This document shows positions 1 through 54,800 of a stretch of 64,000 nt of DNA, in pieces. Source of the stretch: Mizuhopecten yessoensis (taxonomy: Eukaryota); contig NW_018408896.1 of assembly GCF_002113885.1 (NCBI RefSeq), forward strand, positions 186,001 through 250,000, written 5' to 3'. Each line of letters opens with the position of its first letter. Position 1 is the stretch's first letter. A model generated the notes under the pieces. That model was given only the letters and a program-made list of their open reading frames with translations, had not been told where the DNA came from and searched no databases. Position numbers and translations under genes: made by a program.

Positions 1-1026
1 ACAATGGTGTGATGTTACTCTCTAATAGCTCCGAGGAAATGCAGCTTCAGTCATAGTTTAGGCCATTCACAAAAATATAATAGCGTATTAGTGTTAACAA
101 GATGGAAACAAAAAGATGGTCTAGGTCTGTAATACAATATAAACGACTATCTTGTCAGAGGCTACATTTACCAATAATAGCCAATGACGTTCATTCCATT
201 ACGAAGTAAATACTTGTCCTTGTTTTCAAAGTAAATGCCACAATTTGATCAATCGATCTTTTTTTCAAATACTTGTAAGAAAAATGATCGTCACATTAAC
301 CCCCTTATCACCCATACACCCACTTCTGTGAACCGTTTGTTCCACGTCGACATCACAGGAAAGGGGATGAAACATGATGGGTATATTTTGATCTTTGGGA
401 TATTTCATTAGATCCCAATTTACCAAAGTGTAGGAACACAGTTCAAAGCATAGCTGTGGACGGGGAGAACGTGGTTGCCAGGTCACAGTTATTAATCAGA
501 AGGATGTTAAGTCAGAAAAGGGCTCACATGTACACTGTATGGGTGAAACTCTCTCTTCCATGGGTCAGCTTATTACATGTCTCAGATGTTGTGTCATTTA
601 TAAAAAAAAACATGCAATCTACACCGTTGCTTAACTTTTAAAACTAAAACACATCACTTGTATACCAATTTACTCATCATACACCACTCAGAACGACATT
701 GTTCACATCAAATAACTTTCTATCTTGAGGACTTGTCTTCATCGCAATTTCCACACATATTATGCTAAAATATAGCCAGTTGTAAAATGTTGAACATTCA
801 CCCTGAATGATCAGACCTGGAAGTTAAAATAGCCGATTATTTTTAAACTTAAAGCTGATGACGCACGCGCTGAAAAACGGGTCGTTAATTTTCCCTTAGA
901 TTCGACGTTAATTGTCGATGAGATAAATGAGATATATCTATTCTTGAAACGTGTTTATATGAATCTGGCAGTAATGTACCAATCATCATCATATTTGATT
1001 GAAAGTTGGACCTTTGTTTCTTTCAG

Positions 1027-4000
1027 AACCCGGATGAAGTAGGACCTGCCTTAAGAGAAGCCATAGATCTGGGGTACCGTCACATTGACTGTGCAGCTCT
1101 GTTCAAAAATGAAAAAGAAATCGGGGAGATTCTTAAAGAGAAAACAACACTTGGAACAGGAACAATTGATCGAGATGACTTCTTTATTACATCCAAGGTA
1201 CATCTGTGTGTATCTACACTAAAATTCTAAAGCACTTATTTTGACACATTTGTATCACCAGTCGATGAAATATTTCCCTCTTTATGACAAGTTGCTTGTT
1301 TTGAAGAACGCACCTTAGTTTCCGAAACGTTATGGATGACCTCAATTGAGATAACAATATCCAAAAAAAAGTCATTGACATAGATCGACAATGAGATATG
1401 TCGTTAAACCAAGATCATCTTTACATATCAAGTAATAGACTGGTATTATACTATAAATACGCGATATGAAAAAGCTATAAAGTAAATAGTGTGACTAGGA
1501 TTACAGATATACCATTCTTTCTAACATTTTTCCGTAGATTTGGGGAACAGATCTTAGACCAGAGAAAAGTCTCGAATCCCTCAAGAAAACACTGGGAGAC
1601 CTGGGACTGGAATACTTAGATCTCCTGCTTATTCAGGTTCCTTTCGGGCTTAAGGTAAGTTGGTATTGGTCCTAACTCGTAGGAGCAGTTAGCTTTTTCG
1701 CATTCAGACACAAGACCAGTAAATAAGGCGTATTAAACAGTTATGCTTTTCCATTGTTTTTCATTCAATGATCTCGTTAATGGATGTGTGGCTTGTAAAG
1801 TGTCACAATGTTTCAACCGAATAATTGCAGGAAACTATGATTGCAATGTCAGGAGGAGAGATATGATTTTAATAAGAAACGACACCGATTGAATGATAGT
1901 GAAATCATTATACTGCCATATGCTTATTTTAGGAAGGAGACGAATGTTTTCCAAAAGAAGAGGATGGAACCTTTAGCTTAACGGATGTAGATTACGTAGA
2001 CACATGGAAGGTTGGTGTATTACTACCTAGAAGTATTAACACTGTAGCTCTTATCAGGATTTTATGAAATATGAAAATTTAAAGAATATTGTATATTTAT
2101 GTGAGGTTCATGAAACGTCGATTCATTAATACATGACACATTTTACTCATCAGTAATTTGGTATTAACCAGTGATCCTCTAATTTTTTAACCTTCATTTG
2201 ATGAATAGGTTTTATGCCTCTCCCCCTCTGTTTCAAAAGACCTATATCAAGATTTCTCTGTCTTTTTGGCCCCTAGCATCACTAGATGGACGAAACGGTC
2301 GTATGGTGCAGCGTACAGTTTCTATCACCAAATTTTATGCAAAATCACATGTTTGTATCTTACGTTCGATATTGAACCAACATTTTCTCTCCAAGGAATA
2401 AATCTAGAACGAAATTTTCCCGTTTTGCATTATATGATAAACGGCTTATTGCATTTCTCACATGTGTTTTGATGGTTCTTAGGTATTAGAGTCACTGGTA
2501 GACGAAGGTTCCGTCAGGTATATAGGTGTGTCCAACTTCAACTGTGCTCAACTTCAGAGGTTACTTGAATCTCCGGGGCTACGGTACCGGCCAGTGTGTA
2601 ACCAGGTCAGTGGATTTTTTTTATTTTTTATGATATGTAGTATATTTTGCATTACAAAGCTATTGCTGTGTACTATTAGCAATAAAGTTCACATCTGCAG
2701 ATGTTTGCTACCATAATTTGTAACCCAGTGTGATAATTTTATTTTTTACACATAAACAAAATATGATAATGGCCCGAGATTTCCTTTATGTCTTTAAGGT
2801 AGAGGTTTCACCTTACTATGTCAACGAGAAACTAGTCCAATTTTGCCAAAGACGAGACACACCAGTAGTAGCATATGCACCTCTCGGAGCACCGGCAAGA
2901 CCATGGTGAGAAAGCATTGATCTAATGTCGAATATTGCTAATGTTGAGAGACACCTTTCGTATTAATGAGTATTCATTGACCCTAGCTATACAGCGAAAC
3001 TATATGGACAATACAGTTGCAATTATAAAAGCATTCTATAATATAATCTCTTTCCCTTATGTTATGTCGATCAATATGATAACTGTATATTACATGCGAT
3101 GACTATAGTGCATGGAAGATCTTAATCCTAATCGTTCAAGTACGCGGTTTTTTTCCGTTATCTTAGGCAGTTAAGTAATATATGGTTGTTTAGTCATTTG
3201 ATAAACATGTAAACTGCATACTTTATACAATGACCATTAACAGGAAAGAGAAGGTTTTTTTTTAATAGGTGTTAAGTTATTCCTCACACTTTAACAGTTA
3301 TTTACTATCTAGTTCTCTGCTTGCTATAACGATAATGTGTCCCTAAAAAAGGAGATTCAAGACCATGTTCCATTCAAGTTTATACCATTTTACAGGGTAC
3401 AAAAAGATGAACCTTCACTTCTCCAGGAACCGGTTATAGCAAAAATTGGCAAATTCCATAGACGAACACCGGGTCAGGTAAATTCACACGTTTAAATATA
3501 AAAAAACGAATTCAAAGGAAAATAGTTTTGTTTACAGAGTTGTAGGTGAACAAACGAAAAATATTCTCATCTTCAATTTGTTAAGAATCATGTAAAATCA
3601 AAACTAACAAAATTTGTAAGGATTCAAAATAAGGTCGTATGTTTGGAAATTTCACAAAAAAAAACTATTTTAAAACAGTTTGCAGTTATGATTCGTTAAG
3701 CTAGTCATATTTGAACAACTGGACCCTGCTATGTAATCACCAATATATGATATAGTGATATCATTCAACCCGTGTCATACTTGCTATGCATTGTTAGCTG
3801 TAACGTTGTTGTCACTGTTATTATCTTTGTTCCAAGACCTTAACGATACTGTCAGCATATATAACAACAAATTATTGTTTCATGTCAAAGGCACCAAACA
3901 AATCTAAATATGAATTGTCAAGTTTATCAATCGAAAGTTATTACATTTATCGTTATCTATTCCGTCTTTGTGTATTGCATAGTTATCTTCTCTTGTGAGC

Positions 4001-42832: not shown

Positions 42833-45800
42833 TTAGGCAAGTTCTGCAAGGCCATCCCAGGGTTTTCTTGATTTAATCAAAATATCTACTGCCTCTGCCA
42901 GATTCTTCACAATAGCTGATGGTTTGACTGTGGGATGATTCTCATCTTTGGATCTGAAAAAATATATTAAAAAAAAAAAAACAACATTTTTGATAGAAAT
43001 TGCTCAGGGTAGTGACTATTTTTTTTAGTATCAGTGGTTTAAAGTAGACCTTTTGTTGTAACACATAACTTACAATCAACCTTAAAACCCTCTCAGCACT
43101 ATAGTCACCACATAAACATGATTTAGTAAAAACATGTCAGATATAGCTTATAAATTTTGCATAAATGTCAATCAAACTTTTCTATTTTTCTATACGAGAA
43201 AGGATCTGCGATGTTTTATTCCTAACTTTTACACATATTTAATTTAAACACTTTACATCCCCACAACTTCACTATGAATGGCATCACTAACAAAGCCTAT
43301 ACAGCATTGTATTGTCTGTGTGTACCTGCACTCCTCTCATTAAAAACAGAGTCCCTCGCCCCTACTACAAGAATATCACTCAAAAAGTCTCTCTAACCTA
43401 CCTGTATTCGTTTGTGCGGATCAGCACCCTCTCATCCTAGATTCCAGTGCCCCTTTTACATCACTCACAATGTCTCCCTTCCCTGCCTGTATTTACCTGT
43501 GTGGACCAGCACCCCTCTCATCCCAGATACCAATGCCCCCACATCACTCACAATATCTCCCTTACCTACCTGTATTTACCTGTGCGGACCAGCACCCCTC
43601 TCATCCTAGATTCCAGTGCCCCTTTTACATCACTCACAATGTCTCCCTTACCTGCCTGTATCTACCTGTGTGGACCAGCACCCCTCTCATAGCAGATTCC
43701 AGTACCCCTCCTACATCGCTCACAATGTCTCTCTTACATATGTACCTACCTGTATTTACCTGTGTGGACCAGCACCCCTCTCATACCAGATACCATGCCC
43801 CTTTTACATCACTCACAATGTCTCCCTTACCTACCTGTATTTACCTGTGTGGACCAGCACCCCTCTCATAGCAGATTCCAGTACCCCTCCTACATCGCTC
43901 ACAATGTCTCTCTTACATATGTACCTACCTGTATTTACCTGTGTTGACCAGCATCCCTCTCATACCAGATACCATGCCCCTTTTACATCACTCACAATGT
44001 CTCCCTTACCTACCTGTATTTACCTGTGTGGACCAGCACCCCTCTCATACCAGATACCATGCCCCTTTTACATCACTCACAATATCTCCCTTACCTACCT
44101 GTATTTACCTGTGCGGACCAGCACCCCTCTCATCCCAGATACCAGTGCCCCCACATCACCCACAATGTCTCCCTTACCTATCTGTATTTACCTGTGTGGA
44201 CCAGCACCCCTCTCATCCTAGATACCAGTGCCCCCACATCACTCACAATGTCTCCCTTACCTACCTGTATTTACCTGTGTGGACCAGCACCCTTCTCATC
44301 CCAGATACCAGTGACCCTTAATCACTCACAATGTCTCCCTTACATACCTGTATTTACCTGTGTGGACCAGCACCCTTCTCATCCCAGATACCAGTGACCC
44401 TTAATCACTCACAATGTCTCCCTTACCTGCCTGTATTTACCTGTGCGGACCAGCACCCCTCTCATCCCAGATACCAGTGACCCTTAATCACTCACAATGT
44501 CTCCCTTACCTACCTGTATTTACCTGTGTGGACCAGCACCCCTCTCATCCCAGATACCAGTGCCCCTCCCACATCACCCACAATGTCTCCCTTACCTGCC
44601 TGTATTTGCCTGTGCGGACCAGCACCCCTCTCATTCCAGATACCAGTGCCCCCACCATCACTCACAATGTCTCCCTTACCTACCTGTATTTACCTGTGTG
44701 GACCAGCACCCCTCTCATCCCAGATACCAGTGCCCCTCCTACATCACCCACAATGTCTCCCTTACCTACCTGCATTTACCTGTGTGGTACAGTACCCCTC
44801 TCATCCCAGATACCAGTGCCCCCACATCACTCACAATGTCTCCCTTATATTACCTTCCTGTATCTACCTGTGTGGACCAGCACCCCTCTCATCCCAGATA
44901 CCAGTGCCCCCACATCACTCACAATGTCTCCCTTACCTACCTGTATTTACCTGTGTGGTACAGCACCTCTCTCATCCCAGATTCCAGGCCCCTACTACAT
45001 CACTCCCAATGTCTCCCTTACCTACCTGTATTTGCCTGTACGGACCAGCACCCCTCTCATCCCAGATTCCAGGCCCCTCCTACATCACTCACAATGTCCC
45101 CTTACCTACCTGTATTTGCCTGTGTTTACCAGCACCCCTCTCATCCCAGATTCCAGTACCCCTCCTACATCACTCACAATGTCTCCCTTACCTACCTGTA
45201 TTTACCTGTGCGGACCAGCACCCCTCTCATCCCAGATACCAGTACCCCTCCTACATCACTCACAATGTCTCCCTTATATTACCTACCTGTATTTGCCTGT
45301 GCGGACCAGCACCCCTCTCATCCCAGATTCCAGTGCTCCTCCTACGTCGCTCACGATGTCATCTCCTACCATGACGACCTGTAAAGGAACGGGAGCATTT
45401 ATTACCCTCTACTGAAGTGTAGGGCGTACATCCACACCACATGGGAATGTAACATGGATCTAAGCTTGCATCTCCTGTAGTACACAGACTTAAGCTTGGC
45501 ATATACTATAGGGGATGCAAGAAGCATGCTACTCTTCCATGTGGTACATGGCATTATTTAACCTTGAAGATTAAAATTAAGATCTATTGCTTGTCTTGAT
45601 TTATAAAACTGTTACTGAGTTAAAGACAGTCAATTTTATGAAATGCAATAAAGTGAAACTTGTATTATCTGACACTTTGTAAGACACAATATATATCAGT
45701 TAGATTAACCTGTCTAATCTGACACCCTTAGAGACACTATATATATGGGTCAGATTTACCTGTCCACTCTTAAAAATTGTGGTACACAATTCCGTATAAT

Positions 45801-48800
45801 GGTAAAAGTAGACAGGAAGTTTGAACATTTTAGTCTTAATTGCAAGTTTTATTACAAATGAAATTAAAGCATTATGTTATAAAGAACAGGATGTTGGAAT
45901 ATTCAGGATTAACTGCTTATGGCAGTTTCATTGTAAATCTATTTACCACTAAGGGTTTTCATGAGTTCAAGCCTGCCACACATTGCCCACAGTTTAAAGT
46001 TACATGCATAGCCTGACACAAACAGTACCATGAAACATGTATACATGTTATTTTCAATAGTTAAAAACAAAAATCTATTCATTTAATTTCTTGCCATTTT
46101 GATCTCACCTTGTCAGCACTGAGGCCCATGTTCTTCACAGCAGTGTTGAAAAAGATAGCAGATGGTTTTCCTACAATTTCAGCTTCAACATCACAGGCAT
46201 ACTGTAATGTAAACAATTACAAAGTTACCTCCCCTTTGTGTAACCTTTTAGAATATGATAAACAAAAGCAAATTTACTAAACATGTACGTACCTAGTACA
46301 TTTCCTTATATTGTATTTGATATTACCTCAAAATACAACTTGAATTTGTAATGGGGCTCATATAAGTTATCCACAAACATTGTGTCTAGTGCTTGTGATA
46401 TATACACAGTAAACATTTTAATCAAAATATCTTCAAATAGGTAACAAGTGAACAAGGGTTCCAAATGCCCTGTATCCCTCACATGTTTTTCAAAACACAC
46501 ACATCAGACATACTCGGTGAGTGACTTTCACAGTGGCACAAGATTAGATTTACAGCAAGCCACAGGCCAAATGTAACTCCTTTAGGACTTTTAGACAATA
46601 GGCCCAGAGGGCCTGTATCGCTCACCTGAATATTATACTGTACTACAAATATTTCACTCGCAAACTTTGTCCGCTTCATCTGTTAAAATATTATTATAAG
46701 ATTCTATGCTTTTTGGTTCTTGTTTGACATATTTTCCCCCCTGTTACCTTGAAAGTAGGTCAAGGTCATTTTAATTTTCAAACTTTGTCAGGCTCTATCC
46801 CAGGAGGCCACCAGCCAAATATGAAGATTCTATACCTTTTGGTTCTTCAGAAGAAGTCGTTTGAAGAGTTTGACATATTTGACCGCTGTGATCTTGAAAG
46901 TAGGTCACTACGACAGGGTAGATACCGATGGAGGCACGACAACGTCTTGCGGGTCCTAGCGGATATCCTTGAAGTGGAGAGAAGGAAGAAAAGAACTGGT
47001 GTAAGAACAAACCAGGCTGGTATCAAGTTTGTGAAACCAGGGGAGAAAGCCACAGTGAAGCCTCGAAGCACCTCATCCATCTTTGAACGGGCGTCAACAT
47101 GGGAGATGAAGGTTGACCTTGACAGGAAGCTTGTGTTTCCAGGAATAGTGGAAACAACACTGAGGCCTGACATGGTAATCTGGACAGAGCAATCCAGACA
47201 CCTCATCGCCATAGAGCTCACCGTACCATGGGAGGAAGGCTGCGAGGAAGCTCACGAGAGGAAGAAAGCCAAGTATGATGAGCTGATGGAAAAGTGCAGG
47301 AGCAGAGGATGGACAGTATGGCTCTTTCCAGTGGAGGTTGGCTGTAGAGGTTTCCCCGCACAGTCAGTGTGGAGGACACTACGGTCAATAGGACTCACTG
47401 GGAGGGCAAGAGCTACCGCCATCAGACGATTGGGAGAAGCTGCAGAGAGAGCATCGTGCTGGCTATGGCACAAACGAGATGAGCCGATGTGGAAGCCGAC
47501 ATAGACGAGTAGTGGTTTGGCCACCACTACTGACCCACCAGCCGGAGGATGTAGTGATTAAGGGTCGAAACATCTGAAGAGGGCTGGCCATCACCTGATG
47601 ACGTCAAATGAGGCTTCGCGACTAGAATGACAGCAGTGACGGACTACAAGTCAAGGATGTCACAAGATGCAGAATCACCATCATCTGTAAGCAATCATCA
47701 TTTTTCTGAGAAATCAGTGACTTCCAGGAAAGGCTGGATGGAAACTGGGGAAGACCAGTGACGCTGGAGAGACAGATGACATCCAGAAACAGACTGGAGC
47801 AGGGTACTTTGTGTCAGCAACTCGAAGTATAGCTCCCGCAAGGGGGCACCTATATCAAGCTACAGAACAAAGAAAAGAGCAACACCCCCAGAGCCTCCCG
47901 AGAGGGGGGGAGGATGAGAGGCTCACTCGGACAGATCAAACGGAAACGACCAGGACACGGACAAACACAACGATGATCCAAACAACGTTAAGTGGAGAGC
48001 CAGTCGAAGCACGATGCCATTGTGGAAAGATATGCAAGAACAGCAGAGGGCTGAAAATCCATCAGGCAAGGACCAAATGTGGCCATAGGGAGATACTAAC
48101 GCAGCGCACAGATATCAGCAATGAATCTGGTGAGACGCAGGAGGAACTCAGTCAGGAGTCAAACCATAGTACAGAGAGCCTCCAAGCTTCGGTGTCGCCA
48201 GATGGCAGCATTGGTAACTTGAATGAAGCGAGCGCCCATGGTGTTCAAGCAGTGAGGGACAGGAGATTAGACAAAGTGCAGTGGCCCAAGACAAATGACG
48301 AGGCAGCTTGGCGAAATCTTGATCAGGACCTGGAGGCTATTTTGGAGACCACTCTACAGGGGAATGTGGAGAGGAAAGTAGAAGCACTGACGTCAATTGT
48401 GTACAGTGTATGCAAAGAGCGATTCGGAGTGGAAACATCCAGAACACAACCCAGAGCAAAGACAACAAAGGAGAACAGGAGGGAACGTAAGATCAAACAA
48501 CTACGAAAGGAGCTGAGGGAATTAGGAAAGAGGTTTAAAACAGCACCAGAGAGTGAAAAAGTTGGGATACAGCAGATAAGAGACGACCTTAGGGAGACAC
48601 TTCGCCGCCTAAGGAATGCAGAAAGACTAAGGAAGGGAAGGAAGGAGAGAGCGAAGAGAAGAGCAGATTTTGTTAAAGATCCATTCCAGTTCTCAAAAAC
48701 TTTGCTAGGAGCAGAGAGATCAGGCCATCTGGAAAGCTCGAAGGAGGAAGTGGAAGCTCATCTCAAAGGTGTCCATTCAGACAACAGGAGAGCAGAACCT

Positions 48801-51800
48801 TTAGGATATTGTCCAAGAATCTTAGAGGTAGAGGCCCCAAGTGCACCATTGGATACCAAACTTCCTACCTGGAAAGAGATTCAAGATGTGGTGAAAAAGG
48901 CAAGATCAGGATCAGCCCCAGGACCAAGTGGGATAACGTACAGGGTTTACAAGAAATGTCCAAGACTGCTAAGAAGACTGTGGCAGCTAATCTGTAAAGT
49001 ATGGAAGAAAGGGACCATACCGGCGTGCTGGAAGAAAGCAGAGGGAATCTTTGCTCCTAAAGAGAAAGACTCCAAGACAGTTGAACAATTTAGGACCATA
49101 TCGCTGCTGAGTGTCGAAGGAAAGATCTTCTTCTCGATACTTGCCAAGCGCATGACAGCCTACATGGTGGAAAACAGTTACGTCGACACCTCAAGTCAGA
49201 AGGGAGGAATCCCTGGGTTTTCAGGATGCGTAGAACATACAAGCGTCATCAGCCAACTGATCAGAGAAGCCAAGCAGAAAAAAGGTAACCTGACAGTGGT
49301 ATGGTTAGATCTTGCAAACGCCTATGGATCTGTACCACACAAACTGATTGAGGCAGCCCTGGACCATTATCATATTCCGGAGCACATCCGGAAAATGATA
49401 ATGAGCTACTTCGGAGGGATACAGTTGCGGTTTACAGTTGGGGAAAGCACTACAGCGTGGCAAGACCTGGAAAAGGGAATAGTTACAGGATGTACCATTT
49501 CACCTATACTCTTCATCATGGGAATGAATATCATCATCAAGGCAGCAGAGAGAGAAACCAGAGGACCTAGAATGGAGTCTGGCATCTACCAACCAGCCAA
49601 TAGAGGCTTCATGGATGACCTAACGATCACTACCACCACACATGTACAGGCCAGATGGGTCTTGTCCGCGCTGGAGGAGGTAGTTACATGGGCACGGATG
49701 CAGTTCAAACCTCGGAAATCACGTTGCATGATTATGAGGAATGGCAGACTCAGCCGACAGTTTGTACTGAAGGTCCAAGAGGAGGAGATACCTTCAATCA
49801 TTGGCAGCCCCATAAAGTGCCTAGGGAAATGGTTTGACGACACACTCAGTGACAGCCAGAACCACAAGAACACCCAAAGCCAAGTGCGCCAGTGGATGAA
49901 GAAGATCCACAAGTCGGGACTTCCTGGAAAGTACAAAGCATGGATATACCAGCATGGCATGCTACCAAGGCTCACATGGCTGCTGCTACTGTATGAAATA
50001 CCAACCTCAACAGTAGAAGGGTTAGAGAAGATGGTGAATGGGTACCTGCGGAAGTGGCTTGGGGTCCCACCAAGTTTCACATCAGTTGGGCTGTACAGTT
50101 GTTCGGCAGAACTACAACTACCATTCAAATCGGTCGTTGAAGAGTTCAAGGTAGCAAAATGCAGGCTGGTGATGACTCTGAGGGACTCCAAAGACGTGAA
50201 AATCAGCGAGGCAGGGATACAGACAAGAACAGGGAGAAAGTGGTCAGCAAGCACTGCAGTTGGTGAAGCAGAGAGTATGCTCGAGTTGAAGGATATCATC
50301 GGGAATACCTGCGTCGGAAGACAAGGAGTTGGCTTCTCTCATTTCCAGCAGTGGGAGAAAGCAAATACCCAAGAAAGACGGCAAATGGTGCAGAAAGAAA
50401 TCAGAAGGATTGAGGAGGAAAGGAGGAGAGGGAAATCTGTAGAACTCAGCAAACAGGGTGCGTGGACCAGATGGAATCTCCCAGAGAGGAAGATGACGTG
50501 GGCTGAAATATGGAGAATGGAGCCCTTCCGGATATCATTTCTGCTACGATCCGTGTATGACACGCTACCATCTCCTGTTAACCTGCATCAGTGGGGATTG
50601 ACGGAGGATCCTTGCTGCAAGCTATGCGGAGGAAGAGGAACAATGGCTCATATCTTGTCTGGTTGCAAAGAAGCACTACGACAGGGTAGATACCGATGGA
50701 GGCACGACAACGTCTTGCGGGTCCTAGCGGATATCCTTGAAGTGGAGAGAAGGAAGAAAAGAACTGGTGTAAGAACAAACCAGGCTGGTATCAAGTTTGT
50801 GAAACCAGGGGAGAAAGCCACAGTGAAGCCTCGAAGCACCTCATCCATCTTTGAACGGGCGTCAACATGGGAGATGAAGGTTGACCTTGACAGGAAGCTT
50901 GTGTTTCCAGGAATAGTGGAAACAACACTGAGGCCTGACATGGTAATCTGGACAGAGCAATCCAGACACCTCATCGCCATAGAGCTCACCGTACCATGGG
51001 AGGAAGGCTGCGAGGAAGCTCACGAGAGGAAGAAAGCCAAGTATGATGAGCTGATGGAAAAGTGCAGGAGCAGAGGATGGACAGTATGGCTCTTTCCAGT
51101 GGAGGTTGGCTGTAGAGGTTTCCCCGCACAGTCAGTGTGGAGGACACTACGGTCAATAGGACTCACTGGGAGGGCAAGAGCTACCGCCATCAGACGATTG
51201 GGAGAAGCTGCAGAGAGAGCATCGTGCTGGCTATGGCACAAACGAGATGAGCCGATGTGGAAGCCGACATAGACGAGTAGTGGTTTGGCCACCACTACTG
51301 ACCCACCAGCCGGAGGATGTAGTGATTAAGGGTCGAAACATCTGAAGAGGGCTGGCCATCACCTGATGACGTCAAATGAGGCTTCGCGAATAGAATGACA
51401 GCAGTGACGGACTACAAGTCAAGGATGTCACAAGATGCAGAATCACCATCATCTGTAAGCAATCATCAAGGTCATTTTAATTTCAAAACTTTGTCTGGCT
51501 CTATCCTAGGAAGCTACCAGCCAAATATGAAGTTTCTTTAGATTTTAGTTCTTCAGAAGAAGTGTTGACCCCTGTGACCTTGAAACTAGGTCAAGGTCAT
51601 TTTTGTTCTCAAACTTTGTCGGGCTCCTACCAACGAAGCTTTCTGCCAAATATTATGACTTTAGGCTTGTCTCAACTTCAGTTCTTCTTCAGAAGTTGTT
51701 TAAAGGAAAAGTTGACGGACGACGGACACCGCACCATGACATAAGCCCACTTGCATTTCGGGCAGGTGAGCTAAAAATGCAAACAGGTTTTCAAGTATTT

Positions 51801-54800
51801 GGCCTCTCTGAGCAAGAAAGAACTGTAGGCTAAAGTCATCTTTTAGGGCAAACTTGCTTGCTGTCCGTTTGTGCAAGCAATTTGTTACTGACTGAGTAGC
51901 ATTACCCTCAGAAAACATGATTCAAAGCTTTTGACACATTTGACCCTGTGACACTGAAATCATGTTAAATTATGGTCCATCAGTCCAACAGAGTTGATAG
52001 TTCTTCACCCAGTATACAACCAGTAAATGTAGCTAAGCAATCTAGCTGCTTATGCAGCAGAAGATGCTTTATCATCTATTGACATTTGACCCAATGTGGG
52101 TCAAGGTCAATCATTTAGATTTATTGGTAGTGCTTCATCCAAACACTACTGGCAATACATCCTGACCCTAGGCATTTGGTTATTCAGACTTATTTGTTTG
52201 AAGTTTTTTTACACATTTAATTACAGATGTAATCCCTGCGACCTTGAAAGTGGGTCAAGGTCATTCATCTGAATACATTAATAGCCCTCCACCTTTAGAA
52301 TACTACAAACCAAATACCATGATCCTAGATCTAGACCTCTTTGTTATTCAAAAGATGTTGTTTAAATGTTTTCACACCATTGAGCCCTGGGACCTTGAAA
52401 ATAGGTCAATTTCTTTTATTTGAAAAACGTCATAACCCGGCCTCCAACCCATTATAAAATGTACTACTGGTCATCTATTACCAGTATGACCCTTTGCCAC
52501 TTTTATTACCTCCAGAGCACGACTGAATGACCCCACATCTAATACTAAGTTTCCTCCATCTTTGTAATATCTCCTGTCAAAACAAAACATGTAATTATTA
52601 CTTTCCTGTCGGAGTGCATTTTCGGAAAATATCTTTTAATTTTCATGAAGAACATTTTTGAAGTCGATCATGTCTGCTGAATTTTAGTATCTGGTTATAT
52701 TTAAATTATAGATTTGTTTTCGTCCTGATTTAATTGGATCAACAAAAACCTGTCAGTTGACAAAAATCTTTTAACTCATCTTTTGAAATCACTTTTCAAT
52801 AAAAGACACAATCAAAACAGAACAAAAACAATTTGTTTGCTGATTATATTAAAATCAAACTTAAAAATCAAGCAAAAGTTCTGAGTTGGAGATATGTTCA
52901 ATTTTAGGCTCAAATACCCAGTCATTATTCAAGGTTTATCAAAATTCACAAATAGTTATTGTCAGCTAGTTTAAATGCAAAACAGTCAATTGCATGCACT
53001 TATCTGACCATACCCTTTGCCCAGGGAGAAGAGGATGGGCTTATCCAATGATATCAGAGTCTGAAAGGTCTTGTTTAGGTTTGCATAGGAAAACTCATCA
53101 ATGGCATCCCCCACTACCACACAATTGGGATTATCCGTCGCCACATCGCCAAAATCTGCTAATGCACCTGACAGACCCGAAGTTCAGTTAAATGTTATCA
53201 ACATCAATGTTTTTAGTATTCAATAATATATACTTTAGCTGCCATTAAACCCAGTATCCATCCCTAGTGCTAGAAACCCAGTATCTATCCCTAGTGCTAG
53301 AAACCCAGTATCTATCCCTAGTGCTGGAAACCCAGTATCTATCCCTAGTGCTGGAAACCCAGTATCTATCCCTAGTGCTAGAAACCCAGTATCTATCCCT
53401 AGTGCTGGAAACCCAGTATCTATCCCTAGTGCTAGAAACCCAGTATCTATCCCTAGTGCTGGAAACCCAGTATCTATCCCTAGTGCTAGAAACCCAGTAT
53501 CTATCCCTAGTGCTGGAAACCCAGTATCTATCCCTAGTGCTAGAAACCCAGTATCTATCCCTAGTGCTGGAAACCCAGTATCTATCCCTAGTGCTAGAAA
53601 CCCAGTATCTATCCCTAGTGCTAGAAACCCAGTATCTATCCCTAGTGCTGGAAACCCAGTATCTATCCCTAGTGCTAGAAACCCAGTATCTATCCCTAGT
53701 GCTAGAAACCCAGTATTTATTCCTAGTGCTGGAAACCCAGTATCTATCCCTTGTGCTAGAAACCCAGTATCCATCCCTAGTGCTGGAAACCCAGTACCCA
53801 TCCCTAATGCTAGAAACCCAGTATCTATCACTAGTGCTAGAAACCCAGTATCTATCCCTAGTGCTAGAAACCCTATATCCATCCCTAGTGTTAGAAACCC
53901 TATATCCATTCCTAGTGTTAGAAACCCAGTATCTATCCCTAGTGTTAGAAACCCAGTATCCATCCCTAGTGCTAGAAACCCAGTATCTATCCCTAGTGCT
54001 GGAAACCCAGTATCTATCCCTAGGGCTAGAAACCAAGTATCCATCCCTAGTGCTAGAAACCCAGTATTTATCCCTAGTGCTAGAAACCCAGTATCCATCC
54101 CTAGTGCTAGAAACCCAGTATCTATCCCTAGTGTTAGAAACCCAGTATCCATCCCTAATGCATGAAACCCAGTATCCATTCCTAGTGCTAGAAACCCAGT
54201 ATCCATCCCTCGTGCTAGAAACCCAGTATCTATCCCTAGTGCTAGAAACCCAGTATATATCCCTAGTGCTAGAAACCCAGTATCTATCCCTAGTGCTGGA
54301 AACCCAGTATCTATCTCTAAAGTGCTAGAAACCCAGTATCCATCCCTCGTGCTGGAAACCCAGTATCTATCCCTAGTGCTAGAAACCCAGTATCTATCCC
54401 TTGTGCTGGAAACCCAGTATCCATCCCTAGTTCTGGAAACCCAGTATCCATCCCTAGTGCTAGAAACCTATTATTCATCCCTAGTGCTAGAAACCCAATA
54501 TCTATCCCTAGGGCTAGAAGCCTAGTATCTATCCCTAGTGCTAGAAACCCAATATCTATCACTAGTGCTAGAAACCCAGTATCCATCCCTAGTGCTGGAA
54601 ACCCAGTATCCATCCCTAGTGCTAGAAACCCAGTATCTATCCCTAGTGCTAGAAACCAAGTATCTATCACTAGTGCTGGAAACCCAGTATCCATCCCTAG
54701 TGCTAGAAACCCAGTATCTATCACTAGTGCTAGAAACCTAAATTCCATCCCTAGTGCTAGAAACACAGTATCTATCCCTAATGCTAGAAACCCAGTATCT

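Follow-up and report, generated by a model that had tools for sequence, protein, structure and literature searches.

An Obligatorily Tandem LINE of the Scallop Mizuhopecten yessoensis with Predicted Hammerhead Ribozymes May Copy Itself from Circular or Longer-than-unit RNA

Introduction

Zebulon of Tetraodon nigroviridis, a LINE for which we know of no reported ribozyme, is said to retrotranspose as a partial tandem. The element described here, from the scallop Mizuhopecten yessoensis, is like Zebulon in combining a reverse transcriptase (RT) with a C-terminal restriction-like endonuclease (RLE) and in occurring as partial tandems, and a Danio relative is a 1.8-mer with the same hammerhead motif. 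By census (19/19), the scallop tandem is obligatory rather than just frequent.

Penelope-like elements also form partial tandems, in which the upstream copy is 5′-truncated and differs in length from case to case (Cervera & de la Pena 2014; Lunse et al. 2017), and they share with the scallop element a hammerhead in the repeated terminal part, which places two sites one unit apart. They encode a GIY-YIG endonuclease and a telomerase-like RT in contrast to the RLE and R2-like RT of the scallop element, and their hammerheads are minimal, of type I, and act as dimers, whereas the scallop motif is pseudoknotted with strand order S-G-C and a split core. In the retrozymes of plants and metazoans, too, tandem DNA holds ribozyme sites at a spacing of one unit (Cervera et al. 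2016; Cervera & de la Pena 2020); their monomers are excised and circularized, and the resulting circles are proposed to serve as template, whereas scallop circles are hypothetical. Retrozymes are small and non-coding, borrow the RT of other elements, and have hammerheads of the classic type III or type I, unlike the 3.8-kb autonomous LINE of the scallop. The analogy with Penelope pseudo-LTRs and retrozymes made in the original prediction holds for the anatomy, a partial tandem with two sites one unit apart.

R2 is the nearest relative among solved RTs, lacks poly(A), and has a 3′ UTR pseudoknot, as does the scallop element; further likenesses are a self-cleaving ribozyme that processes R2 RNA from a co-transcript and an RT that can jump templates. 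The R2 ribozyme is HDV-like and lies at the 5′ end of an element that is 28S rDNA-specific and not normally tandem, whereas the scallop hammerhead variant lies in the 3′ UTR and could have a 5′ processing role only via the upstream partial copy, and the ~65 scallop flanks examined show no target specificity. HeT-A has a similar head-to-tail layout in which the 3′ part of the upstream copy serves the downstream copy; its arrays grow as copies are added again and again at chromosome ends, and what the upstream copy provides is a promoter, whereas the scallop arrays are dispersed single events.

The closest described ribozymes are the type-SGC hammerheads, which are not circularly permuted and which cleave in vitro (Eckert, Friedrich, Weinberg & Weinberg 2023, PMC10085705). 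These have the same order of cleavage-site, GAAA, and CUGANGA blocks as the scallop motif and share with it a linker of ~3 nt between stems I and II, an extra clamping stem, and multiple pseudoknots. In the scallop motif the 5′ strand of stem II is found not after CUGANGA but 5′ of the whole motif, so that Block C is split; Eckert et al. (PMC10085705) assumed that the A9/G10.1 position could not be interrupted. The published examples come from metatranscriptomic circular-RNA-like sequences, whereas the scallop motif comes from an animal LINE.

Results

The window is the whole stretch of 64,000 nucleotides of M. yessoensis DNA that was analyzed, and the features of the array within it are collected in Table I. 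Comparison at an offset of 3768 nt shows that the 795 bp of the upstream partial copy (46906-47700) recur at 50674-51468 with a single mismatch (C at 47622, A at 51390), with identity dropping at once beyond both ends of the repeat. The partial copy meets the full unit at ...AATCATCA|TTTTTCTGAG with zero spacer, as the original prediction had described. Only the downstream copy has A at 51390, with C present in 25/25 other aligned pieces (counted as HSPs, with some loci represented twice), and three further arrays have upstream pieces that match the upstream partial copy without a difference. It comprises the C-terminal endonuclease coding part, the stop codon, the hammerhead, and the tail. 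The host DNA is a ~145-bp satellite with clean boundaries at ...GTAGGTCA (5′) and AGGTCATTTT... (3′), and a search for a target-site duplication at both array boundaries in the satellite found none. The 4563-bp feature is best explained as a HERO/Zebulon-type LINE inserted in a single round of retrotransposition.

Table I. Positions of array features and of the elements of the downstream hammerhead motif in the window
Feature	Position	Strand	Evidence
Upstream flank, ~145-bp satellite, target cut after ...GAAAGTAGGTCA	46739-46905	+	Repeat families D3/D4, sequence
Upstream partial copy, last 795 bp of unit (unit positions 2974-3768)	46906-47700	+	1 mismatch/795
Rearranged hammerhead copy 1, with cleavage predicted 3′ of A47553 (GUA^G)	47532-47601	+	Identical to copy 2; covariation
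147-nt tail of upstream copy, ending ...AATCATCA, adjoining head without spacer	47554-47700	+	Sequence
Full 3768-bp unit, RLE-type LINE	47701-51468	+	
Conserved structured 5′ UTR (head), several hairpins	47701-47850	+	Cross-species compensatory changes
ORF, 1153 codons, first ATG 47973	47811-51272	+	Pfam, translation, RT comparison
Rearranged hammerhead copy 2	51300-51369	+	Alignments, pair counts
Copy 2, stem II 5′ strand	51300-51304		
Copy 2, clamp 5′ strand	51306-51311		
Copy 2, stem III	51315-51320		
Copy 2, H17 (A), predicted cut site	51321		
Copy 2, stem I	51322-51326		
Copy 2, stem II 3′ strand	51330-51334		
Copy 2, GAAA	51335-51338		
Copy 2, stem III 3′ strand	51338-51343		
Copy 2, clamp 3′ strand	51350-51355		
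Copy 2, stem I 3′ strand	51358-51362		
Copy 2, CUGAUGA	51363-51369		
147-nt tail of full unit, 3′ end meeting satellite (AGGTCATTTT...)	51322-51468	+	Census of 3′ ends
Downstream flank, same satellite continuing	51469-51688	+	

The ORF product contains an RT at residues 419-641, a CCHC zinc knuckle, and a C-terminal RLE motif, read in the translation as RHD...RPD...E-L-T...KAKY (PD-(D/E)XK-like). Pfam matches are RVT_1 (9e-21) and zf-RVT (1e-5), and among solved proteins the RT is nearest to R2 (5e-25). Homologues of the ORF are present in amphioxus, bivalves, and teleosts, and the nearest named protein is a Tetraodon "polyprotein" (AAN12398.1, 48% identity over 95% of the ORF), which we take to be Zebulon. 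With RT, CCHC, and endonuclease in a single ORF, no LTRs, and frequent 5′ truncation (~79 tails compared with 13 heads in the genome), the element is an RLE-type LINE of the R2 superfamily, putatively of HERO/Zebulon type. A Penelope-like element was rejected, the GIY-YIG domain being absent, the C terminus RLE-like, and the RT nearest to R2; the retrozyme class was rejected on the 3768-bp autonomous unit and the non-classical hammerhead.

The hammerhead motif is situated in the tail immediately 3′ of the stop codon. Its 70 nt are identical in the two copies, with each predicted cut (after 47553 and 51321) placed 147 nt ahead of a unit end. The strands run in S-G-C order with the stem II 5′ strand displaced upstream of the whole motif, the full order being II-5′, clamp, S, G, clamp, I-3′ plus CUGANGA, with Block C split between A9 and G10.1. 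Across 14 sequences the patterns CUGANGA, GAAA, and GU plus a next base of A, U, or C do not vary, nor do the core columns C3-A6, G8, A9, G12-A15.1, and U16.1, whereas N7 is U, G, or A and H17 is A, U, or C, never G. The four helices covary in the same 14 sequences, 94.4% of cells being paired compared with 34-47% in slid controls, and compensatory (two-sided) changes occur in 17/22 pairs, a count matched by 0/500 shuffles. Stems I, II, and III have 94, 93, and 99% of their cells paired, with two-sided changes in 12/16 pairs. A search of Rfam found no hammerhead model matching the motif, even at E ≤ 10, and the order is not that of type I, II, or III nor of a published permutation with uninterrupted blocks; the chain break between A9 and G10.1 counts against the predicted ribozyme being active. 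On covariation and core sequence, the hammerhead-type sites are real conserved motifs with predicted self-cleavage. The two sites foreseen in the original prediction are real as conserved motifs, though invisible to Rfam; the GUA^G sequences lie at 47551-47554 and 51319-51322, 3768 nt apart, and the ORF falls wholly between the predicted cuts, as had also been proposed.

The head contains a box, CAGTGACTTCCAGGAAAG, that is conserved among relatives, and its DNA is highly conserved across elements only about 65% identical. This conservation is attributable to RNA structure with compensatory changes, the RNAalifold consensus over the heads of 7 elements having 41 pairs, 17 with two-sided changes.

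The census of partial tandems proposed in the original prediction, in which all 31 head candidates were scored and those at least 92% identical were taken as intact, shows a shared junction throughout. All 13 intact 5′ ends of the subfamily in the genome are preceded by the 3′ end of another copy, as are 6/6 heads of three diverged subfamilies (19/19 in total). At 13-14 loci the junction recurs amid unrelated flanks, and the upstream pieces differ in length (26, 103, 137, 286, ~340, 384, ~403, 778, 795, 797, 988, ≥1092, and ≥1650 bp), a range from 26 to over 1650 bp that lends no support to a fixed pseudo-LTR. Three of the 13 pieces, with unrelated flanks, start close together at unit positions 2972, 2974, and 2990 (roughly p = 0.02-0.09 by our estimate after correction for the post hoc window), and this cluster leaves room for a preferred RNA 5′ end. 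Chromosome-scale or Mb-scale records of four other species have upstream pieces of 1662 bp (the amphioxus B. belcheri), 204 bp (the zebra mussel, Dreissena), 3105 bp (Danio aesculapii), and 25 bp (the king scallop, Pecten maximus). Metagenome and Logan contigs wrap around a single unit, and public-run contigs, of uncertain kind and uninformative on RNA ends or circularity, cross the junction. The head-to-tail junction is thus obligatory in the family, in 19/19 cases here and in all four other species checked, and the 1.x-mer is its normal product and no local accident. The census shows that reverse transcription in the scallop family never terminates at the first base of the unit; every copy extending as far as the head continues into a tail and halts at no set position, which produces the 1.x-mers. 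Two complete units were found in none of the arrays, compared with about 1.7 in 13 expected for a rolling template at the first-round fall-off rate, which counts against such a template, and the fall-off rate is about 3× higher past the junction than before it. Each tail carries a hammerhead, and therefore a transcript across an array has two sites 3768 nt apart.

In every young array, whether the junction base is A or G goes together with the alleles at head SNPs 825 and 958, and 10/13 junctions are free of extra untemplated bases. Private SNPs number 2/3528 in upstream pieces and 9/6596 in units (p = 0.35), indicating no difference in age. The predicted cut site is read through in 70/74 tails, and 2 begin there, ± 1 nt (Poisson p about 0.003-0.01), an indirect sign of site-specific cleavage. 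In 17/30 cases (p = 0.002) the base after a complete 3′ end is T, like that of the head, and 3/4 arrays with a complete downstream end continue into TT or TTT, which is head-like (p = 0.003); these Ts could be untemplated additions.

Discussion

The reading that best accommodates these observations, favored tentatively and at somewhat less than an even chance, is that the template RNA had its tail joined to its own head; the element may copy itself from circular or longer-than-unit RNA. If jumping were optional with a probability of 0.8, 19/19 would have p = 0.014, which counts for a same-RNA template. The linkage of the junction base to head SNPs and the lack of an age difference between upstream pieces and units likewise speak for one event and one RNA, and the T after complete 3′ ends weighs on this side too. 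The original prediction noted that the cut precedes the element end by 147 nt, and that a cleaved linear RNA could not be primed from that end. This is answered in part, as 70/74 copies were templated straight across the cut site and the templates were therefore uncut, held together, or re-ligated. Against a same-RNA origin, array C76696 has G as its junction base and A as its own terminal base.

Two routes to a joined template may be envisaged. In the first, the hammerheads would cut a read-through transcript twice to give a cut-to-cut monomer, the ends of which, being ribozyme halves, could re-pair via 17 bp (stem II, clamp, and stem III) in a ligation-ready arrangement and form a covalent circle. 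In the second, both RNA ends would be held in one ribonucleoprotein, with synthesis passing from the 5′ end onto the RNA's own 3′ end. Target-primed reverse transcription would begin inside the RNA, at a set point lying 147 nt 3′ from the cut, and the RT would circle once and then fall off. On a circle the element's own RT, rolling past one turn, would regenerate a 1.x-mer with its upstream ribozyme and so supply what the next round requires. In that next generation the upstream hammerhead would free the element RNA from host read-through and possibly permit cap-independent translation. That an autonomous protein-coding LINE replicates via ribozyme-made circular RNA, in a cycle like that of viroids or retrozymes, is considered unlikely. 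Two ENA contigs joining two different elements (68% identical) tail to head count against the joined template because a circle cannot yield two different elements.

End-to-end template jumping in the manner of R2 is regarded as somewhat unlikely. The RT would reach the 5′ end of a unit-length RNA, jump to the 3′ end of a second RNA, and stop at random, and the hammerheads would serve another purpose, e.g. 5′ processing, translation, or RT binding. The RT of the element is closest to R2 proteins, and R2 RT reportedly jumps end to end in vitro. The variable upstream lengths fit a random stop on the second template, and the rise in fall-off rate after the junction is what a change of template might cause. 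The heterologous tandems also favor jumping, being present in two independent ENA assemblies (L063 and L064), but these are short-read metagenome assemblies that could be chimeric via the conserved UTRs. A jump efficiency near 100% would be required, as heads abut flank DNA in 0/19 cases. The scarcity of untemplated bases also argues against jumping, as does a variable junction base that is lineage-inherited; head type equals tail type in all young arrays, and heterologous arrays number 0/19 in the scallop genome despite its 3-4 subfamilies.

An unlikely alternative to the joined template is a linear partial-tandem RNA, transcribed from the upstream piece through the junction and the unit and copied whole or 5′-truncated. 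The transcript would start inside or upstream of the upstream piece in the manner of a pseudo-LTR or HeT-A, possibly near unit position 2972, where the cluster of starts lies. Inheritance of the junction and the public-run contigs spanning it are in keeping with such an RNA, and Zebulon was titled a LINE "with tandem structure" (Bouneau et al. 2003, Genome Res 13:1686). The three longest pieces (988, ≥1092, and ≥1650 bp), however, extend beyond a start at 2972. Progeny pieces would never be longer than those of the parent and should shrink over generations, but those of the youngest subfamily run from 795 to over 1650 bp, and other arrays have not inherited the SNPs private to the longest one (C5113). 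The TT/TTT run-on in 3/4 arrays would need a two-junction parent, and none has been assembled.

Two separate insertions, in which a full copy came first and a 5′-truncated copy was later targeted to its 5′ boundary by a self-targeting head, are highly improbable. The strong conservation of head DNA and the heterologous tandems of relatives would suit this scheme, but the former is accounted for by RNA structure, the first-step product (a head beside flank) is seen in 0/19 cases although the youngest arrays are 99.9-100% identical, and the units are no older than the pieces upstream of them. An assembly artefact or local segmental duplication has a negligible probability and was rejected as a general cause, for although identical 3.8-kb tandem units could collapse or misjoin in a fragmented assembly of 82,659 contigs, the junction recurs at loci with unrelated flanks and different upstream lengths, in the records of the four other species, and in the independent public-run contigs.

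The partial-tandem structure itself has been published for Zebulon, and what is new here is its link to tandem ribozymes and the tandem census. The scallop motif extends the known hammerhead permutations to an interrupted core block, and does so in animals. How RNA ends are defined in LINEs with no promoter or poly(A) is an open question outside R2 and L1, and the scallop family offers a clean, testable case. If near-100% template jumping is the mechanism, the family would be a natural system for the reaction exploited in R2-based gene insertion tools. If instead templates of unit length or circular form are generated by the paired ribozymes, a LINE would replicate on the same logic as retrozymes, viroid-like RNAs, and Penelope pseudo-LTRs, which would hint that this end problem has been solved convergently, and a circular cycle, if true, would place a retrozyme- or viroid-like cycle in a LINE clade spanning amphioxus, bivalves, and teleosts.

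Structure of the Array and the Element

The array is composed of an upstream 3' piece and a full unit placed tail to head, the head being the 5' end of the unit, the tail its 3' end, and unit positions running 1-3768 (see the table). Comparison at an offset of 3768 shows 50674-51468 to be identical to 46906-47700 save for one base (47622 C versus 51390 A), with identity breaking off sharply at both ends of the 795-bp repeat, and confirms the original prediction of a 795-bp fragment fused without spacer to a 3768-bp copy with a single difference. At the junction the piece (...AATCATCA) directly abuts the first base of the unit (TTTTTCTGAG). Only the downstream copy has the mismatch at 51390, C being present in all 25 other aligned pieces (counted as HSPs, some loci having been fetched twice). 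The host sequence is a ~145-bp satellite with the insertion lying between ...GTAGGTCA and AGGTCATTTT..., and as these two adjoin in the uninterrupted satellite repeat the insertion has neither duplicated nor deleted target sequence. In one search 20 same-organism sequencing runs contain the element, all in the form of Logan contigs whose kind is a guess. Over 47240-51000, the tail-head junction is spanned by contigs from three studies, which carry G at 47700 and have no bearing on RNA ends, strand or circularity; a joint in the contig layout that "goes back 3761" is an artefact of the permuted reference.

Features of the window array, of other arrays and of the predicted ribozyme (C-numbers are contigs of the scallop's own genome, L-numbers fetched loci or contigs)
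Feature	Location	Strand	Detail
Upstream piece	46906-47700		795 bp
Full unit	47701-51468		3768 bp
ORF, single per unit	47811-51272; first ATG 47973	+	translation
Reverse transcriptase in ORF			Pfam RVT_1, 9e-21
CCHC knuckle in ORF			Pfam zf-RVT, 1e-5, slightly below Pfam cut-off
C-terminal region			RHD / RPD / E-x-T / K-x-x-Y pattern, as in restriction-like endonucleases; translation
Rearranged hammerhead motif	47532-47601; 51300-51369
Stem II			GACCC/GGGUC, covarying helix
"Clamp"			CCAGCC/GGCUGG, covarying helix
Stem III			GGAUGU/ACAUCU, covarying helix
Stem I			GUGAU/AUCAC, covarying helix
Strong hairpin	47507-47531; 51275-51299		AGUAGUGG / CCACUACU; between stop codon (51270-51272) and hammerhead
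~145-bp satellite	46739-46905; 51466-52416		unit includes CCCTGTGACCTTGAAAGTAGGTCAAGGTCATTTT; copies 66-94% alike
84-91-bp tandem repeat	45015-45361		4 copies, 70-94% alike; GC-skewed stretch
Upstream-piece start, C5569	window 46906		unit position 2974
Upstream-piece start, L036	C1809:935432-938631		unit position 2972
Upstream-piece start, L038	C4275		unit position 2990
B. belcheri array			upstream piece 1662 bp, 100% identical, period 3805
Dreissena array			upstream piece 204 bp
Danio aesculapii array			upstream piece 3105 bp, period 3896
Pecten maximus array			upstream piece 25 bp

The closest solved proteins to the reverse transcriptase (RT) of the element are the R2 reverse transcriptases (5e-25), and the element has full-length relatives (45-65% identity) in amphioxus, scallops, mussels and many teleosts. 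Judged by domains and motifs, the element is assigned, among the kinds compared, to the RLE LINEs only. It has no poly(A) tail, and no target preference is found among ~65 different flanks. The Tetraodon "polyprotein" AAN12398.1, with 48% identity across 95% of the ORF, is taken here to be Zebulon, a LINE reported to form partial tandems, for which the title of a 2003 paper by Bouneau and colleagues announces a "tandem structure." Literature searches on Zebulon as a non-LTR element and on hammerheads with RLE returned nothing relevant.

Every Intact Head Follows a Tail

The check proposed with the original prediction was a count of genomic copies that are partial tandems with the same junction. 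With the unit's initial 200 bp as query against the scallop's own genome, and all 31 candidates scored, intact heads (≥92% identity) occur at 13 loci and 13/13 have another copy's 3' end immediately upstream, as do 6/6 intact heads in three diverged subfamilies (~75% identity), the tails there being of their own kind. The flanks of the 13 arrays are unrelated to one another, and the upstream pieces measure 26, 103, 137, 286, ~340, 384, ~403, 778, 795 (window), 797, 988, at least 1092 and at least 1650 bp, the longest (C5113 and C1165) having lower-bound lengths only. Copies that do not reach the head, starting for example at unit positions 115, 125 and 151, adjoin flank DNA directly. Two heads one unit apart are found on no own-genome contig, so that every array is a partial tandem of 1.x units with x < 1, with the reservation that a short-read assembly could collapse longer arrays.

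Similar tandems are present in other species (see the table) and in other contigs, with 2.07 units on one JGI contig, one Logan contig that is self-closing by an overlap of 25 nt and six DNA contigs from Tara Oceans that wrap round a 3728-bp unit; wrapping is limited to L061, L062 and the Tara contigs, an exact terminal overlap being absent in L070 and L071. A contig from a sample labelled human gut metagenome (L065) was left out of the analyses. The recurrence of the same tandems at many loci and in other species and contigs excludes assembly error and local duplication as a general cause.

Several loci have individual features. At C5383:99740-100080 (L037/L008) mutations cluster round the junction, the 137-bp upstream piece carrying 4 differences and the head 3 within its first 58 bp, whereas the 1640 bp that follow carry just 1. 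Two independent older copies (L051 and L052/L054, on C4499, C79453 and C483) start exactly at unit position 151 (TATATCAA...), L052 and L054 being one insertion duplicated later, since they have a common flank. The tail pairs at C1374:84721-86139 and C5254:5290-8466, 1.25 kb and 3.0 kb apart with identical flanks, are local duplications of truncated copies and not tail-head arrays.

A Hammerhead Motif with Rearranged Strand Order

No non-coding part of the element is as well conserved as the 70 nt immediately following the stop codon, the ORFs of the elements sharing only ~65% of their nucleotides. The motif boxes are out of order for any type I, II or III three-way junction, with GAAA lying 5' of CUGAUGA, and a chance match was considered on this ground and dropped on the cross-species alignment. 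The alignment contains 14 sequences (amphioxus, three bivalves, fish, five metagenome/Logan contigs and two diverged own-genome copies; an earlier version of the alignment and pair counts had 10), in which standard pairs fill 94.4% of cells compared with 34-47% when the partners are slid, compensatory double changes occur at 17/22 pairs and the observed pairing values are reached by 0/500 shuffles. The hammerhead core positions are all kept (CUGANGA with N = U, G or A; GAAA; the A15.1-U16.1 pair), and the cleavage triplet consists of GU plus A, U or C, never G. The cuts originally predicted after 47553 and 51321 coincide exactly with the H17 positions of the predicted hammerhead. A CACUG box ahead of stem II is also kept in relatives.

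The strand order opens with the 5' strand of stem II and one side of the clamp; next comes a block made up of the 3' strand of stem III, the cut and the 5' strand of stem I, and, after a linker of 3 nt, a block with the 3' strand of stem II, GAAA and the 5' strand of stem III; the other side of the clamp and a block of the 3' strand of stem I with CUGANGA close the motif. No ribozyme family is matched in Rfam (E ≤ 1 on 5.3 kb, E ≤ 10 on the 3' UTR), which given the pseudoknotted strand order is not evidence of absence. Non-circularly permuted hammerheads of S-G-C order have been validated in vitro (Eckert et al., 2023). The element's motif shares with them the S-G-C order, the 3-nt I-to-II linker and the extra clamping stem, whereas its stem II 5' strand sits at the front, which interrupts "Block C" between A9 and G10.1 in the scallop motif.

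In the scallop's own genome the 28-mer immediately 3' of the cut occurs 74 times and the 26-mer across the cut 70 times, indicating that on nearly all templates copying passed the site without a break. The cut is the starting point of two copies, C4657 (unit position 3620-3622) and C1349 (3622/3623), compared with ~0.1 expected at ~1 truncation per 1850 nt (Poisson p about 0.003-0.01), a weak hint that templates may occasionally be cleaved. After cleavage the products would stay paired via stem II, the clamp and stem III (17 bp), so that the predicted cut would be a nick within a stable knot rather than a release, and the two ends of a cut-to-cut monomer would carry the two halves of the motif and could re-pair and be sealed. 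Such an anatomy would bear on the paradox raised in the original prediction, in which the end of the element lies past the predicted cut.

At the other end of the unit, the head forms a conserved multi-hairpin RNA with 41 predicted pairs, 17 of them with compensatory changes (window 47701-47850 compared with L061, L062, L063, L066, L067 and L068), and a near-invariant box, CAGTGACTTCCAGGAAAG, frequently occurs in two copies. The head could be an IRES-like or RT-binding element. An R2-style HDV-like ribozyme at the 5' end was rejected, there being no Rfam match and a multi-hairpin fold in its place.

Nature of the Template

The reading tentatively preferred is a template in which the tail and head of a single RNA are joined, either as a covalent circle or with both ends in one RNP; a true circular RNA is in itself fairly unlikely. 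Several observations favor a same-RNA template. The head is the 5' boundary of the insertion in 0/19 cases (p = 0.014 were the jump optional at probability 0.8), and the junction is exact at 10/13 loci. Its lone variable base (A or G) is co-inherited with head SNPs 825 and 958, so that head and tail types match in all young arrays; as this base follows lineage, untemplated addition is ruled out as its source. Private SNPs number 2/3528 in upstream pieces and 9/6596 in units (p = 0.35), the two showing no difference in age; an age asymmetry that seemed significant in a pairwise count is gone with private SNPs. The 3' ends are ragged (unit positions 3765-3768), and T, matching the head, comes next after 17/30 ends reaching 3768 (background 0.30, p = 0.002), with 3/4 arrays that have a complete downstream end continuing into TT or TTT (p = 0.003). 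These T's also favor the same-RNA template, although untemplated A-addition by the RT would give the same picture.

Other observations count against a same-RNA template or for jumping in trans from one RNA to another, which is somewhat unlikely overall. In C76696 the array's own terminal base differs from the junction base, fall-off is ~three times faster after the junction than before, arrays of two or more units are lacking in the assembly, and in two ENA metagenome contigs (L063:85-7330 and L064:97-7420) two different elements, 68% identical, lie tail to head. The two contigs are either real heterologous tandems or assembly chimeras formed via conserved UTRs; in L064 a third head fragment comes after the second tail. 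A linear transcript that is itself a partial tandem is rather unlikely as the template, its support being three upstream pieces with unrelated flanks that start within 18 nt of one another; the RNA may have a preferred 5' end at these starts (2972-2990), or the RT may pause there. The private SNPs and the tandem census lead to the rejection of sequential self-targeted insertion, and any other explanation of the template is improbable.

Relation to Known Elements

The predicted ribozyme sites one unit apart resemble those of Penelope pseudo-LTRs and of retrozymes, R2 is similar in its anatomy of ribozyme processing and a jumping RT, and Zebulon shares the partial tandems. A tandem structure has already been reported for Zebulon, taken here as a relative. 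What is new is that the junction is obligatory and family-wide, that every junction brings together two copies of a split-core putative hammerhead proven by covariation, and that there is evidence bearing on the nature of the template. The element is of clear interest, as simple experiments can decide among the template readings.
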